DNA of 64,000 bases from Octopus bimaculoides (lineage: Eukaryota), in contig NC_068993.1 of NCBI RefSeq assembly GCF_001194135.2, positions 64,616,360 through 64,680,359 of the forward strand, written 5' to 3'. Below the pieces are notes generated by a model. It made no database searches, was not told the origin of the DNA, and was given only the letters and a program-made list of their open reading frames with translations. A program made the position numbers and the translations under genes. This document shows positions 6,342-62,549 of the stretch, in pieces. Every line of letters begins with the position of its first letter. Position 1 is the first letter of the stretch.

Positions 6342-6400
6342 ATGCTGTGCTATTTGCTATTATTGTTGTTGTTGTTTCCTTTCGGACTTGTGCTGACAGG
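6342..6400 (+). CDS. Putative coding exon 1 of CUB-domain gene: signal peptide MLCYLLLLLLLFPFGLVLT(G)
   Basis: ATG at 6342, Leu-rich h-region, small residues at the c-region, consensus donor AGG|GTAAGT at 6401, ends in phase 2. Caveat: the Leu run is a TTG microsatellite. Confidence 0.5.
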
Positions 6401-7520
6401 GTAAGTGTTTTATTATAAAACTTGGAAAGCTGCTTTAAAATAGCTCTTCCAATCTCTGCTCTTACCCCCACTGACATTTTGGTGGCAAATTTGACGTCAT
6501 ATTTGAAGACCTGAATAAATTTTACGACATAAATAAAACAAAATTATTCCCTAACGGCAAAAATAAGACGTTTAGACTTTACAAGACATATGGAGTAAAG
6601 ATTTTGATTACTTAATTTTAAAAGACAGTTTAAAACAAAAGTTACGAGCGACTGGAAAGCGAACACGTTGCTGGTACAACAACAATAACAACAACAACAA
6701 CTAAAAGCAGCAACAATAGTAATGATAATAACATTAGCAACAACAACAACGACGCCAAAACCGATGATCTATAGAATGATTTTGTCTGTGAAAGAGTTTG
6801 ACGATTGTGATGACGACGCAAAACGGTAGAGTGGTAGAGAAGACTATAAATACAAAGCGTTCATTATACAGCTTCTGGCGGAAAGAGAATGATGTTTGCA
6901 ACATAAATTGACTCAAACTGTTCTGTGAAACAACAATTAACTTAAAACTCTTTAAAGTTTTCATATTTAATGAAGGTCATAAAATGACCGAGTATGTAAT
7001 AGCATCAACTGTGAGTTTTCTGAGTTTTTTTTCTTTATGACTGTGCAAGACAAAGTAGCTTGTTCATTTTGCAACATATAGCGTCAAATTAGAATCTTTC
7101 ATGTTTTTAATGAGTAAAAATAATGTTTATAGTTGTATATGTGGCGTGTTACTATTATTTCGTGTCTATATCAAATCTGCCGTTTCTTTTTTGTTTTTTG
7201 TACTCAGTCTTGCGATTTTTTTTTTTTTTTTTTTTTNNNNNNNNNNTTTTTTTTTTTTTTGTTTTGTTATTTCTCATATCATCCCAACAAAATGGAAGAA
7301 ATGGAATTACGAGGCAAGTAACAAGTGACTCATAGTTTTTGGACTGTTTCACATTCTCAGAGGAGAGATTTTTCATCATGTCCCCACAGCCGTTTTTGAG
7401 GGCTGCATGAAAATCTACTGTTTTGCTATGATATAGATATAAAAGCGGTACTCCAGCATACATACATACATACATAAATACACACACACACACACACACA
7501 CACACACATATATATACATA

Positions 7521-7860
7521 TTCTCTTATTCTTTTACTTGTGTCAGTCGTCTAACTGCGACCATGCTGGAGCACCGACTTAAAGAGTTTTAGTCGAAGAA
7601 ATGACCGCAGGACTTATTCTTTGTAAGCCTAATACTTATCTTATTAGTCTCTTTTGCCGAACCATTAGGTTACGTAGACATAGACACATCAACATCGGTT
7701 GTCAAGCGACGGTGGAGGGAGAAACACAAATACACACACACACTCACACACACATACACACGCACACACATACATATACAACGGGCTTCTTTCAATTTCT
7801 GTCTACCAAATGCACTTAACTATAGCTCGAGGCTATAGTAGAAGACACTTGTCCAAGGAA
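7521..7860 (-). mobile_element. SINE family B with internal (CA)n, head truncated
   Basis: Reverse complement reads CCTTGGACAAGTGTCTTCTACTATAGCC..GGTAGACAGAAATTGAAAGAAGCCCG..(TG)n..GCTTGACAACCGATGTTG..AAGAATAAGTCCTG..GGTGCTCCAGCATGGTCGCAG..CAAGTAAAAGAATAAG; matches the 60655 copy. Confidence 0.85.
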
Positions 7861-7861
7861 G

Positions 7862-8852
7862 AAAGAGCCGTTACACTTGAGACGTCTGCTGCAGAGACAT
7901 AGAGCATGCTTTGGCAAGCTTACGGTGACGGGGCAATGAGTCGTACGCAATGTTTCGAGCGGCATGGGCGCTTCAAAAATAGAAGAATGTCCTGGGATGA
8001 TGATGAGCGATCCGGAAGACCTTCCACGACAGTCACCCCTGGAAATGTAGAGAAAATTCATCAGGATCGTCGGAGTTCAATGAATGTCATCGCTGATGTT
8101 GTTGGTTTGTTGTACGAGTCCTGTACGTGTCTCTGCCAGATTTGTCCCCCGTCTGCTGACCACTGAGCAGGAAGAACATCGCGTCGAAGTCGGTCAAAAT
8201 CCCGTCAGCCGAGGATGATCACCAGTGACGAGGGTTGGGTCTATGGGCACGACCTTGAGACAAAGCAGCAGTCGGTCGTCACAATGGAAGAGCCCTTCAC
8301 GATCGAAGAGGGCACGACATAGCTGCAGCTCAATCAAGAGCATGCTCATAGTTATTTCGCCATTCGCATCGAGAATTTGTCTCCCAGGGTCAGACCGTCA
8401 TTCGAGAATTCTGCTGCAACGTTTTCAAACGTCTGAGGGAGGACATTCAGCGAAAGGGACCGGATCTGTGGAGCGCGAAGTATTGGATACTTCACGACTC
8501 CGATGCACTCTGTCACTGAGCTCTCCTCACTCGTAAGTTTCTCGCCAAAAACATGGTATCGCCTTATTTAGCCCCTGCGGACTTCCATCTCTTCCCCAAA
8601 ATGAAAACATGGCTCATAGGTAATCGTTTGAACACCGTTATCAAGATCTAGAGGGAACAGCAAAACGTCCTCGACTCGCTTACGGAAAACGACTTTCAAA
8701 CTGGATTCCAAAAGTGGCAAGAATTCTGGGCCCGGTGTATTGCTGCGCAAGAGGACTATTTGGAAGGGGAGGATGTTAAAACTTAGGAAAATAAGTTATT
8801 ATTTTTTTAATTAAACATAACTTGTCCGGGAATTTCTTGATACCACCATTGT
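7862..8852 (+). mobile_element. Decayed mariner transposon, 5'-truncated, right TIR remnant
   Basis: Frames give MLWQAYGDGAMSRTQCFERHGRFK..DDERSGRPST (HTH), ITSDEGWVYGHDLETKQQS (first catalytic D), RLREDIQRKGPDLW, LAPADFHLFPKMK (third D), FQKWQEFWARCIAAQEDYLEG*; TIR-like GTCCGGGAATTTCTTGATACCACC at 8824-8847. Multiple stops and frameshifts. Confidence 0.93.
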
Positions 8853-8899
8853 GTGTGTGTATAATATATAAGTGTACATATATATATACATTACTATGA

Positions 8900-59871: not shown

Positions 59872-59968
59872 TACTTTTTAGTCTATAATGTTACATCTTT
59901 TTGTAGCCTATAGTGTCAGACCTTTTTTAGCCTATATTGTCACATTTTTAGCCTATAGTGTAACTTTT
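59872..59968. repeat. Four degenerate 20-25 bp tandem units (TTTTTAGCCTATAGTGTCAC-like)
   Basis: TAGTCTATAATGTTAC, TAGCCTATAGTGTCAG, TAGCCTATATTGTCAC, TAGCCTATAGTGTAAC separated by T runs. Confidence 0.8.
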
Positions 59969-60654
59969 TGCACGTTTCTTTATCTTCTTTTTTAAATGCT
60001 TGACACAAACGAGAGTTAGATGCTATTTTAAAAGGACTAGCGATCAACAGATTACCAATAGGGTTATTTTAATGTTGTTAAAACTTAATTATTCTGGGTA
60101 TACTGGATGGAATTTTATCAATTTTAATTGGATAAGTTTCATTCATATCCTGCGTGAAACTTTTACCCACGTTCACTTAATCTCACAAAACCTAAATAAT
60201 TCCATTGTTTTCTCACTACCTGAAACCTTGAAATAGATTTACATGGAGGGATTTGGTTACAGAGATGACTAGTAAGAAATTGAATTGAATACCATTGATA
60301 AAACATCTGAAATAATCACAACTGTCCTTGTCACTTTTATATGAAACTATGTTGTATAAGATTTCTAAGAAATCCTTTAGATGCGATCATTGTTCTTTCG
60401 CCTTTCACGCCCAGCACGATGCCAAGCACAAAATTATTTGCTGCTTTAATTAGATGCAATGCAATATGTTTTACCATTATCATTCCCAACAATCAGTGAA
60501 GTTGCATTGTGTGTGTGTGTGTGTGTGTGTGTGTGTGTGCGTGTGCGTGTGTGTGTGTGTTTTCTATTGTCTTACAACTGACAATGTCCTCAATTATGCA
60601 CTCCTCTACTGAGAACATAGCAGGTCCGGAAATAATGCACTTGTCTTACAACCT

Positions 60655-60910
60655 TTCCATGATAAGAAGCTTGCTTCCTAACTACATGGTTCCGGGCACA
60701 GTCTCACTGCGCGGTGACTTGATCAATCGTCTTCTTCTAGCATTTGGTGGGTGAGCATTTGGTACACGGAAACTGAATGAAGCTCGTCATATATATGTAT
60801 ACACGCACACACATACTTACACAATAAGTCCTGGGGTTGATGTGCTCGACTAGATGCGATGCTCCAGCATGGCCGCAGTCAAATGACTAAAAAAAAATAA
60901 AAGAAAAAAA
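60655..60910 (+). mobile_element. SINE family B, internally deleted
   Basis: TAAGAAGCTTGCTTCCTAACTACATGGTTCCGGG..GGTACACGGAAACTGAATGAAGCTCGTC..AATAAGTCCTGGGGTTGAT..GCTCCAGCATGGCCGCAGTCAAATGACT, A-rich tail. Confidence 0.88.
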
Positions 60911-62424
60911 TGCGACAATTTTGCAAAAATATTTCCGACTGAAAATATCACAAATGCATGGAGTTAGGATTTTATGCATCCAACAAAGCATTACTGTAAA
61001 GCTGAAAATGTTGCTAATGTAAAAAGAAATGGAATGGTTTAACTTTTTTTTCCTGTAAAAGTAACGTTTTGGACTTACGACACTTTCGCATAATAGCAAC
61101 GATATATATGTATACACGCACACACACACACGCATATATATATACTTCGTATATGTATATATATATATATATATGTGTGTGTGTGTGTGTGTGTGTGTGT
61201 GTGTGTGTGTGTGTGTATAACGATAAAATAACAAAGGAACGTTTACTGATAATGTAACTTTATGCTGAGAGTAAATTTTATTGGGAGGATGAAGTTTCCT
61301 AAGACTTCACATCTTTCTTTTTACTCAAAGATATATTCAGATATTCTTATATTCATGTTTCAGTGTGAGATTGTGCGTGTAAACATGTGTGTCTGCGTGT
61401 ATGTGTGCATGCATGTACACGTGTTTGAATATCAGGAGAACGGACATTCACAACGATTTTCTGTGAGCTTTCGTCATTTTTAACATGAAACTCAGTTGTT
61501 GAAACAATAGCTTCAAAAACAGAGTTTATCAAGTAATTTATCACCTACTTTGTTGTAATTACCTAAATGTGTTGATGGTCATTGGTCAGTTATCGAAAGA
61601 ATATTTTAATTATTAACTGCTGACAAATTCCTTGCTACTCGTATTTTTTTTTTTATCAACTTGAAATACTGTTTTGCACCAGTCTTTTCTTTTTTACAAT
61701 TTTATATTTAGCTTCAATGAAAACACACAGTATCTCGCAATAATCGCTGTTGCTATCAATAATTATTCTTGATATCAACAAATATTACCCCTGCTATCAA
61801 ATATCACCCCTATTGTCAATAATTGTTTGTATTATCATTGAACCCCTTGCTAACAATAAATAACCCTCTTATCACTCAAAACAAATAGAGATTAAGATAA
61901 TGAGTACTATTCTTGTAAGTGACATCGGTTTCTTATAAATTAGAAATTCCCAAAGTTTAGACAAATTGGCAAATTTTTTCTTGTGCTGGATAAAATGTTC
62001 TGCGGCATCGTTCTGGTTCGCTAAAATCAATGTTCAAATACCCGCCTTTCAGCTTTTCATTTAATAAACAACAAAAGAGTTGCTCGACGGGGTGGGTATG
62101 TCGAGTCCGATCCAGCATTTTGCGTTGTGAGCTTAAATTCCACCTGGGTGCCGATGTAATGTGCGTGGTGGTGGTGAAACTATATACGGTTTCAATTCTT
62201 GATTGATTGTAGAGATGATTTTTTAATGTGGCGGTTTGGTTAATGGTCAGATAGATCACTAAGTTATCAATTTTAACTCAACAATTATTACACTCAACTC
62301 AGACCCATTATTCATTTCCTGCCAAACTCACCACCACCACCATCTTCATCATCGTTATCATATTTCGTCCAAATTTCGTCAGTTGTTATATCGATATTAC
62401 GTCATTCTCATTTGTGTGTTTCAG

Positions 62425-62549
62425 GAATATGTCTTGCAGTTGGCTAATCTATGCGGGAGATCCGAATTATTCGCTGCAAGTAGACTGGCAACGCGTTGAT
62501 ATAGAATACAGTTTAGGTTGTTATAAAGATTTCGTACAGATCTATCGCG
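62425..62549 (+). CDS. Exon 6: middle of canonical CUB domain, NMSCSWLIYAGDPNYSLQVDWQRVDIEYSLGCYKDFVQIYR(G)
   Basis: Acceptor TTCTCATTTGTGTGTTTCAG, donor CG|GTATGT, phase 2 to 1; matches CUB consensus NxxCxWxIxA..DIE...C..DxVxIYxG. Confidence 0.92.

Follow-up and report, generated by a model that had tools for sequence, protein, structure and literature searches.

The stretch of Octopus genomic DNA analysed here (64,000 nucleotides, hereafter the window) very probably lies inside a single large gene, named 'cubilin' by RefSeq, to which it would contribute only two coding exons, the second and the third, at positions 59386-59482 and 62425-62549. The signal-peptide exon of this gene would fall beyond the sequenced part of the window, either over 59 kb upstream or hidden by an assembly gap, and four segments proposed as exons upstream of the coding pair would be chance open segments with good-looking splice sites inside a long first intron. 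An initial annotation had read a hidden six-exon gene in this DNA; its last two exons stand, being identical to annotated orthologues, while its first four find no support. The part that is real is already known, as two exons of a gene present in the public annotation of three Octopus species. The features of the window are as follows.

1..59385, plus strand: putative part of the gene's very long first coding intron; none of the six frames encodes the true signal-peptide exon
6342-6400, 20791-20852, 26280-26420 and 58057-58185, plus strand: proposed exons 1-4 (unsupported), within 1..59385
8918-9421, plus strand: RVT_1 match (Pfam)
50173-50466, minus strand: RVT_1 match (Pfam)
59386..59482, plus strand: coding exon 2 of the octopus eight-CUB membrane-protein gene (proposed exon 5), by orthologue identity
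59483..62424, plus strand: intron between coding exons 2 and 3 (2,942 nt, GT..AG)
62425..62549, plus strand: coding exon 3 (proposed exon 6), by orthologue identity
62550..64000, plus strand: beginning of the next intron, with no CUB continuation

Two coding exons of the first CUB domain

Coding exon 2 is entered in phase 1, a single base (G) being supplied by the upstream exon, and exits with two bases carried over. Its translation, (D)SVNDCLETKNLTASTSSWQLIQSPGYFSKYV(K), is the beginning of CUB domain 1 and is identical to residues 25-57 of the Octopus sinensis protein XP_029644438.1; the exon is also matched by the orthologue P0182 in tblastn (E 6.7e-15) and by a family-specific CUB HMM (E 1.7e-5), and its acceptor (tag|A), with a strong polypyrimidine tract, scores at the 99.7th percentile. 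Coding exon 3, which exits in phase 1, translates as NMSCSWLIYAGDPNYSLQVDWQRVDIEYSLGCYKDFVQIYR(G), the middle part of the same domain, and is identical to residues 57-98 of XP_029644438.1, with E-values of 5.3e-23 against P0182 and 3.8e-14 against the family HMM, and with 81% nucleotide and 93% protein identity to a cuttlefish-like mRNA (L001). The intervening intron is free of assembly gaps, and the proposed junction 59482/62425 is right, since the orthologue protein is reproduced exactly across the splice (FSKYVK|NMSC). Taken together, the two exons (DSVNDC...VQIYR) agree with residues 25-98 of XP_029644438.1 (P0158) at 74 of 74 residues, splice junction included, and the same residues are carried by the O. 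bimaculoides (P0183) and O. vulgaris (P0185) models. It is from this agreement that the window is placed in an Octopus species. Against the cuttlefish-like mRNA, 61 of 69 residues are identical (88%), and the nucleotide differences, 12, 5 and 31 at the three codon positions, fall mostly at the third, a pattern that on comparative grounds marks the reading frame of both exons as under purifying selection.

The CUB consensus motifs reported for these exons are present (SPGY, NMSCSWLI and DIEYSLGCYKDFVQIYR), and Pfam CUB (PF00431) is matched at 35.5 bits (cutoff 21.4) over profile positions 6-62 of 110. When the family-specific HMM was run over all six frames of the window, its matches were the exon 5 and exon 6 fragments only. 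Three CUB cysteines are found in the window, C1 (CLETK), C2 (NMSCSW) and C3 (LGCYKD); the fourth (DHRCG) and the last third of CUB1 are encoded past position 64000, both being present in the orthologues. Between them the two exons supply ~74 residues, the first to follow the signal peptide, which make up the N-terminal two thirds of CUB1. The initial annotation was right to read here a surface protein with a canonical CUB domain, the exons giving the first half of that domain, and right too in expecting the gene to continue past the window: the rest of CUB1 (FDRSGELLDHRCGQSS...), found in orthologues, is absent from the window, where three-frame translation gives no CUB continuation, and tblastn of P0158 and P0182 downstream of 62551 returned nothing significant.

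A membrane protein conserved across cephalopods

The name 'cubilin' is attached in RefSeq to O. sinensis isoforms X1 and X2 (XP_036364424.1 and XP_029644438.1) and to O. bimaculoides XP_052828520.1, and the O. vulgaris counterpart is CAI9732331.1; all of these octopus sequences are models produced by annotation (Gnomon or equivalent) rather than from transcripts verified by experiment. The orthologues show a full protein of ~1,090 residues, in which a signal peptide is followed by eight CUB domains in tandem, a single transmembrane helix and a ~45-residue cytoplasmic tail. In P0182 (1,094 aa), the Pfam domains above cutoff are eight CUB domains and nothing else (no EGF, no LDLa), and hydropathy gives an N-terminal signal-like core and one transmembrane segment at ~1029-1049.

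The gene had at first been given no nameable orthologue and suspected of being lineage-specific. A word-indexed homologue search with the 204-residue six-exon model indeed found nothing, but this null is a false negative, because orthologues were found both by an exhaustive HMMER search and by a search seeded with its top match. That match, P0001, among 1.84 billion representatives (E 1.3e-67), aligns query residues 122-204 with protein residues 18-97, so that the CUB domain directly follows a short leader, and is encoded by an uninterrupted CDS (288-3542) on a 3,974-nt RNA-type contig. With annotated orthologues across cephalopods and Haliotis homologues at 28-30% identity, the gene is, as judged by homology, conserved across cephalopods with gastropod relatives, and not lineage-specific. 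A literature search on octopus cubilin returned nothing on this gene. We infer that the protein is a surface glycoprotein of type I, with a CUB ectodomain that would bind extracellular ligands or partner proteins, and this binding is probably Ca2+-dependent, since the acidic E..D positions of the motif by which CUB domains bind Ca2+ are retained in CUB1 (DIEYSLGCYKDF).

The missing signal-peptide exon and a long first intron

Every orthologue has a signal peptide of 24-32 residues (…MTPFIILGLILQVL(A/G)AA) that runs straight into DSVNDC, or into its Sepia or Argonauta equivalents, leaving no room for the 130 residues of proposed exons 1-4. This direct join is found in O. sinensis, O. bimaculoides, O. 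vulgaris and Argonauta hians as well as in the assembled cuttlefish-like mRNA. The exon joined to DSVNDC is a different, conserved one, M..YTTQFKMTPFIILGLILQVL(A/G)AA, ending in phase 1 with G. A different upstream exon joined to exon 5 is the outcome that the initial annotation had named as refuting its model, and the claim that exons 1-4 belong to the gene falls with it.

The leader …MTPFIILGLILQVL(A/G)AA is not encoded in the window, where the best agreements (8/25 and 6/10 identities) are noise, and none of exons 1-4 encodes it. Six-frame scans for the Octopus, Argonauta and Sepia leader peptides likewise gave noise only. A window scan for a first exon with an ATG, a hydrophobic stretch and a phase-1 end able to splice directly to exon 5 yielded only microsatellite-derived junk, and when the cuttlefish-like 5'UTR and leader were compared with the window (blastn and local alignment), all matches were to microsatellites or at background level. 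The window as sequenced lacks the true signal-peptide exon, which lies over 59 kb upstream or within a gap of the assembly. A first intron of more than 59 kb is plausible, because the O. sinensis gene spans ~397 kb (gene record in GCA_006345805.1). Positions 1..59385 hold LINE fragments, microsatellites and eight assembly gaps in addition to proposed exons 1-4. Pfam searches of 17 other window ORFs returned LINE reverse-transcriptase and endonuclease fragments only, and scanning the window for Rfam families and tRNAs gave nothing. Microsatellites dominated a repeat search over the whole window, which tells nothing about the exons.

The proposed upstream exons

The arithmetic of the six-exon model is correct in every coordinate: AG precedes exons 2-6, GT follows all six, an ATG opens exon 1, and lengths of 59, 62, 141, 129, 97 and 125 nt chain in the claimed phases into 613 nt, or 204 codons, with no stop. 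The plus strand of the window, however, contains 11,248 open AG..GT segments of 50-200 nt. When stop-free, phase-compatible chains ending at proposed exon 5 were counted, with splice scores at least equal to those of the weakest sites in the model, there were 21, 129, 392 and 852 chains with one, two, three and four upstream exons, respectively; because 852 four-exon chains fit equally well, the phase chain of exons 1-4 carries no evidential weight. All eight N-runs in the window, among them two that the program's note does not list (52288-52635 and 54631-54675), fall within proposed introns. No N-run occurs within 54676-64000, so that exons 4-6 share one uninterrupted contig; exons 1, 2 and 3 each lie on a separate contig, linked to exons 4-6 by scaffolding only. 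Codon-usage log-odds per codon, trained on the cuttlefish-like CDS and separating the exons too weakly for use, were 0.11-0.17 for the real exons, 0.06-0.08 for exons 3-4, -0.01 for exon 2 and -0.24 for exon 1, the last two scoring equal to or below random open segments.

Searches with the sequence encoded by exons 1-4 were equally unrewarding. Residues 1-130 had no Pfam match at E<=10 and were absent among the matches listed at E<=50 for the family-specific CUB HMM, run unfiltered (weakest listed E 7.1), so the degenerate CUB domain that had been read in exons 3-4 is not borne out. When exons 1-4 alone were put to a word-indexed search, no match reached E<=10, and among the 150 matches listed from the exhaustive HMMER search none had its best stretch confined to residues 1-121. 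No copies of these exons were found elsewhere in the window. With no domain, no homologue and another leader in the orthologues, exons 1-4 were rejected as parts of the gene. The signal peptide assigned to exon 1 was rejected for this gene as well: spliced directly to exon 5, exon 1 brings two bases in place of the one required and is out of frame, the bridging exons 2-4 are unsupported, and the leader seen in the orthologues is a different one.

Two alternatives to this account can be weighed. The six-exon model could be right in full, describing an unannotated isoform that begins at 6342, has a signal peptide of its own and places 130 additional residues, including a degenerate CUB domain, before CUB1. 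In its favour are the stop-free phase chain, splice scores ranking among the best 1-12% of the window's GT/AG sites, and an exon 1 that, with its ATG and hydrophobic core, is the only such segment in the window with a strong donor (score >=8). The signal-like peptide of exon 1, however, comes from low-complexity DNA, a (TTG)n/T-rich tract, some 850 chains have an equal claim, and the codon usage of exons 1-2 is no better than that of random open segments. The extension, itself without domain or homologue, is missing in five orthologues from three genera, the assembled mRNA among them, and its first three exons are tied together by scaffolding across separate contigs; this model can hardly be right.

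Exon 4 (58057-58185) might instead be meaningful by itself, either as a copy or remnant of the signal-peptide exon or as a rarely used alternative 5' exon, which we consider improbable. Its splice sites are strong on both sides (98.9th and 99.3rd percentiles), a quality reached by only four candidates on the plus strand and none on the minus strand. It ends in ...GAAD(DR); no other GAAD occurs in any of the six frames, where 0.04 would be expected per strand, and the true signal-peptide exon closes with the same residues (…VLGAA|D). The duplication reading was prompted by this unique GAAD, which lies 9 nt ahead of a strong phase-1 donor ending in G, like the true exon 1 end (..GAA|D), and 1.2 kb upstream of coding exon 2; an ungapped comparison by eye with the O. 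bimaculoides leader puts F, I, G, A, A and D at matching offsets. Against this, exon 4 has no in-frame ATG, its peptide FLLFIRCRKHSDIRGAADDR has charges at positions where a signal peptide needs hydrophobic residues, its splicing to exon 5 would add DDR, three residues found in no orthologue, and it is missing from all annotated isoforms. A Sepia-like first coding exon aligned to the region scores no better than background windows. That exon 4, perhaps with exons upstream of it, is a genuine unannotated alternative or vestigial 5' exon derived by duplication of the signal-peptide exon is highly improbable; were it so, splicing of exon 4 to exon 5 would produce an N-terminally altered, possibly non-secreted isoform.

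Comparison with known systems

The octopus 'cubilin' models represent the same gene or a direct orthologue and show no difference in the part covered by the window; their annotated signal-peptide exon lies outside it, and proposed exons 1-4 occur in none of them. The cuttlefish-like mRNA L001, encoding P0001, comes from the Logan assembly of run ERR12374249, and its 90% cluster includes the Acanthosepion pharaonis 'CUBN' protein CAE1288457.1. P0001 has the same architecture and length (1,084 aa), 75% identity to the octopus protein overall, and a short signal peptide followed directly by CUB1, as in the octopus proteins; it differs in representing another cephalopod lineage with its own leader, MKFQVGVTFLILLGLSLSVLGAADDE, and its 5'UTR and leader DNA are not alignable to the window.

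Vertebrate cubilin (CUBN) is a protein of ~3,600 aa with an N-terminal amnionless-binding stretch, eight EGF repeats, 27 CUB domains and no known transmembrane segment. Tandem CUB domains are common to both proteins, and the best solved-structure match of P0182 is the CUB5-8 fragment of cubilin (PDB 3KQ4; E 2.4e-40, residues 48-521). The octopus protein is nevertheless not a true cubilin, because it has ~1,090 aa, eight CUB domains, no EGF repeats and its own transmembrane helix. The RefSeq label is best-hit naming, not orthology.

In layout, an extracellular CUB array with one transmembrane helix and a short tail, the octopus protein is like the receptor auxiliary subunits NETO1/2 and C. elegans SOL-1, SOL-2 and LEV-10. 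Proteins of the NETO/SOL/LEV-10 type have 2-5 CUB domains and mostly an LDLa domain; by Pfam on P0182, the octopus protein lacks LDLa. NETO2 is among the PDB matches of P0182 (E 4.7e-16), more weakly than cubilin or neuropilin. Molluscs have members of these auxiliary-subunit families (PMC9282427). The likeness of the octopus protein to NETO, SOL-1 and LEV-10 auxiliary subunits is, on this evidence, an analogy of layout only.

Implications

The case is of some use for calibrating exon chaining in a repeat-rich cephalopod intron of 36% G+C, where chaining alone is not evidence for a gene, because the eye can trace hundreds of GT-AG exon chains that are free of stops and compatible in phase. Its biological weight is small, as the gene is already annotated and the reading is an ordinary one. 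For the family, the orthologues point to an eight-CUB single-pass membrane protein, for which the label 'cubilin' is misleading.

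Results

Six forward-strand exons had been proposed by the initial annotation as a single gene for a CUB-domain protein, and we read and assembled all of them:

6342-6400 (+), exon 1, 59 nt
20791-20852 (+), exon 2, 62 nt
26280-26420 (+), exon 3, 141 nt
58057-58185 (+), exon 4, 129 nt
59386-59482 (+), exon 5, 97 nt
62425-62549 (+), exon 6, 125 nt

The coordinates and flanking AG/GT dinucleotides, the summed length of 613 nt, the phase chain (2; 2-1; 1-1; 1-1; 1-2; 2-1) and the stop-free translation of 204 codons are all correct, and the CUB motifs SPGY, NMSCSWLI and DIEYSLGCYKDFVQIYR are found in exons 5-6. 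The + strand of the window holds 11,248 open AG..GT segments of 50-200 nt. When acceptors and donors were required to score at least as high as the weakest acceptor and donor of the six-exon model, 21, 129, 392 and 852 stop-free, phase-compatible chains ended correctly at exon 5 with one, two, three and four upstream exons, respectively; with 852 four-exon alternatives under the same limit, the chaining of phases does not count as evidence. Scored by an approximate weight matrix for metazoan splice sites, drawn up from general knowledge, the proposed sites rank in the top 0-12% among all GT/AG sites, as is expected for sites picked by eye. Two single elements stand out somewhat more: exon 1, although its peptide comes from a T-rich (TTG)n tract, is the sole combination of ATG, hydrophobic core and strong donor within the window, and exon 4 is among just four + strand candidates with strong sites on both sides.

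Eight N-runs interrupt the window, all within proposed introns and six of them inside homopolymers or microsatellites. Two, both in the proposed intron 3, are additional to the six previously listed by the program:

52288-52635, assembly gap, 348 N
54631-54675, assembly gap, 45 N

Because 54676-64000 is free of N-runs, exons 4, 5 and 6 lie on one contig, while exons 1, 2 and 3 each lie on their own, tied to the contig of exons 4-6 by scaffolding only.

A word-indexed homologue search with the 204-aa model gave no match, and an exhaustive HMMER search gave 388 proteins among 1.84 billion representatives. The best of these is a cuttlefish-like protein (P0001, 1,084 aa, E 1.3e-67), whose residues 18-97 align with query residues 122-204. 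Its coding sequence runs uninterrupted from 288 to 3542 of a 3,974-nt contig in the Logan assembly of run ERR12374249, which is therefore an mRNA, and its 90% cluster includes Acanthosepion pharaonis 'CUBN'. Used as a query in turn, this protein led to Octopus sinensis 'cubilin isoform X2' (XP_029644438.1, 1,086 aa, 75% identical), the cluster of which contains the following members:

XP_036364424.1, isoform X1
XP_052828520.1, O. bimaculoides
CAI9732331.1, O. vulgaris
GAB1601767.1, Argonauta hians

The word-indexed search had overlooked a database protein that matches the query at 100% identity across 74 residues; negatives from this search on short or spliced queries are not trustworthy alone.

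The translation of exons 5 and 6 equals residues 25-98 of isoform X2 (74/74 identical, including the residues at the 59482/62425 junction), acceptor 59386 agrees with the G|AT split of an Asp codon, and donor 62549 agrees with a split Gly codon. In a comparison with the cuttlefish-like mRNA, 61 of 69 residues match, and the first, second and third codon positions hold 12/5/31 nucleotide differences, a distribution characteristic of purifying selection on this frame. Identity, split-codon fit and codon-position pattern together establish exons 5 and 6 as real, and they are coding exons 2 and 3 of the octopus gene named 'cubilin'. The real feature is a gene that is already annotated. An exon for the remainder of CUB1, the first CUB domain, was not found downstream of 62549 within the window.

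Exons 1-4 did not hold up as part of this gene. Octopus protein N-termini read M(YIFISNQM)YTTQFKMTPFIILGLILQVL(A/G)AA, then DSVNDCLETKNLTASTSSWQLIQSPGYFSKYVKNMSCSWLIYAGDPNYSLQVDWQRVDIEYSLGCYKDFVQIYRGFDRSG..., and in all five orthologues the signal peptide runs directly into CUB1, leaving no room for the 130 residues of exons 1-4; exon 5 is joined there to a different upstream exon, the very outcome that the initial annotation had named as refuting its model. The 'degenerate CUB' proposed for exons 3-4 is likewise unsupported. Pfam CUB (PF00431) is confined to residues 146-203 of the model, encoded by exons 5-6 (35.5 bits, cutoff 21.4), and residues 1-130 have no Pfam match at E<=10. A CUB HMM built from 35 domains of this cephalopod family and run with filters off against six-frame window fragments of at least 20 aa matched only those holding exon 6 (E 3.8e-14) and exon 5 (E 1.7e-5), and the exon 1-4 peptide gave no score against it. 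The observation is partly confirmed, and its interpretation has partial support, limited to exons 5-6.

The true first coding exon is absent from the sequenced bases of the window: a six-frame scan with the leader 25-mer gave at most 8/25 identities, 10-mer scans with Octopus, Argonauta and Sepia leaders gave noise only, and upstream of exon 5 the window holds no other exon combining ATG, hydrophobic stretch and phase-1 donor. Given that the O. sinensis gene ranges over about 397 kb, more than 59 kb is a plausible length for the first intron; alternatively, the exon is concealed in one of the larger gaps, for which the 348-N gap, like those of 567 and 318 N, is a candidate. Exon 4 itself might be a relic or duplicate of the true leader exon, or an alternative exon, which we regard as improbable. 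The true leader exon ends ...VLGAA|D, and translating the window in six frames yields a single GAAD, where 0.04 would be expected per strand; it lies at 58167-58178 (+), 9 nt ahead of exon 4's strong phase-1 donor and 1.2 kb upstream of real coding exon 2. However, exon 4 lacks an in-frame ATG, its peptide carries charges in the part that has to be hydrophobic in a signal peptide, its use would add three residues found in no orthologue, and its alignment with the cuttlefish-like leader is not above background. The GAAD motif may be such a relic or duplicate, or a coincidence.

The remainder of the window (36% G+C, with dense microsatellites) looks like intron. Rfam and tRNA scans of the window found no families and no tRNAs, and eight further ORFs had no Pfam matches. 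Repetitive and protein-like elements are as follows:

2-141 (+), tandem array at the very start of the window, 20-nt unit AATACAGATTCCCTTTTACT, about six nearly identical copies
8918-9895 (+), LINE fragment, RVT_1 match at 8918-9421
50173-51542 (-), LINE fragment, RVT_1 match at 50173-50466 and weak endonuclease match at 51201-51542, below the Pfam cutoff
18177-18283 and 52653-52759, 107-nt inverted repeat, 92% complementary, second arm directly after the 348-N gap
31610-32232 (-), ORFs flanking the gap 31746-32063, non-repetitive and protein-like (...LRQVTEAVCIQEYKPSLNRKSEWGN... and MFVDATPKNVLSKAFKKILHTTGLKIKVVEKTGRTIKSV...)

The two opposite-orientation LINE fragments belong to related elements, as 87 nt (8901-8987 versus 50187-50273) are 85% complementary. 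The inverted repeat probably represents two copies of an interspersed repeat. The ORFs at 31610-32232 have no Pfam match and may encode an unclassified transposable-element protein broken by the gap.

Discussion

The octopus orthologue (P0182, 1,094 aa) has a signal-like hydrophobic core at its N terminus and eight CUB domains, the only family that Pfam places above cutoff. One TM helix spans about 1029-1049, with a tail of some 45 residues behind it, and the sequence contains 13 N-x-S/T sequons as well as 32 cysteines. Among solved structures its best match is cubilin CUB5-8 (3KQ4, E 2.4e-40), ahead of neuropilins, PCPE-1 and NETO2. Cubilin, at about 3,600 aa, combines EGF repeats with 27 CUB domains and lacks a TM segment; the octopus protein shares none of these characteristics and is not a true cubilin. 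The RefSeq product name is misleading for a protein that has eight CUB domains and a TM helix but lacks EGF repeats, and earlier O. bimaculoides models, fragments of the same gene, were called 'deleted in malignant brain tumors 1 protein-like' and 'zinc metalloproteinase nas-39'.

The gene had been thought possibly lineage-specific, but homologues at 28-30% identity occur in Haliotis and paralogues in Octopus, Argonauta and the cuttlefish-like run, and the family is therefore not lineage-specific. In layout alone, the protein resembles the CUB-containing auxiliary subunits NETO, SOL-1 and LEV-10, types of which are present in molluscs (PMC9282427); Pfam detects no LDLa domain in it. The protein would be a type I surface glycoprotein with a CUB array that binds partners outside the cell, probably in a Ca2+-dependent manner, because the acidic positions of the CUB motif for Ca2+ binding are retained in CUB1.
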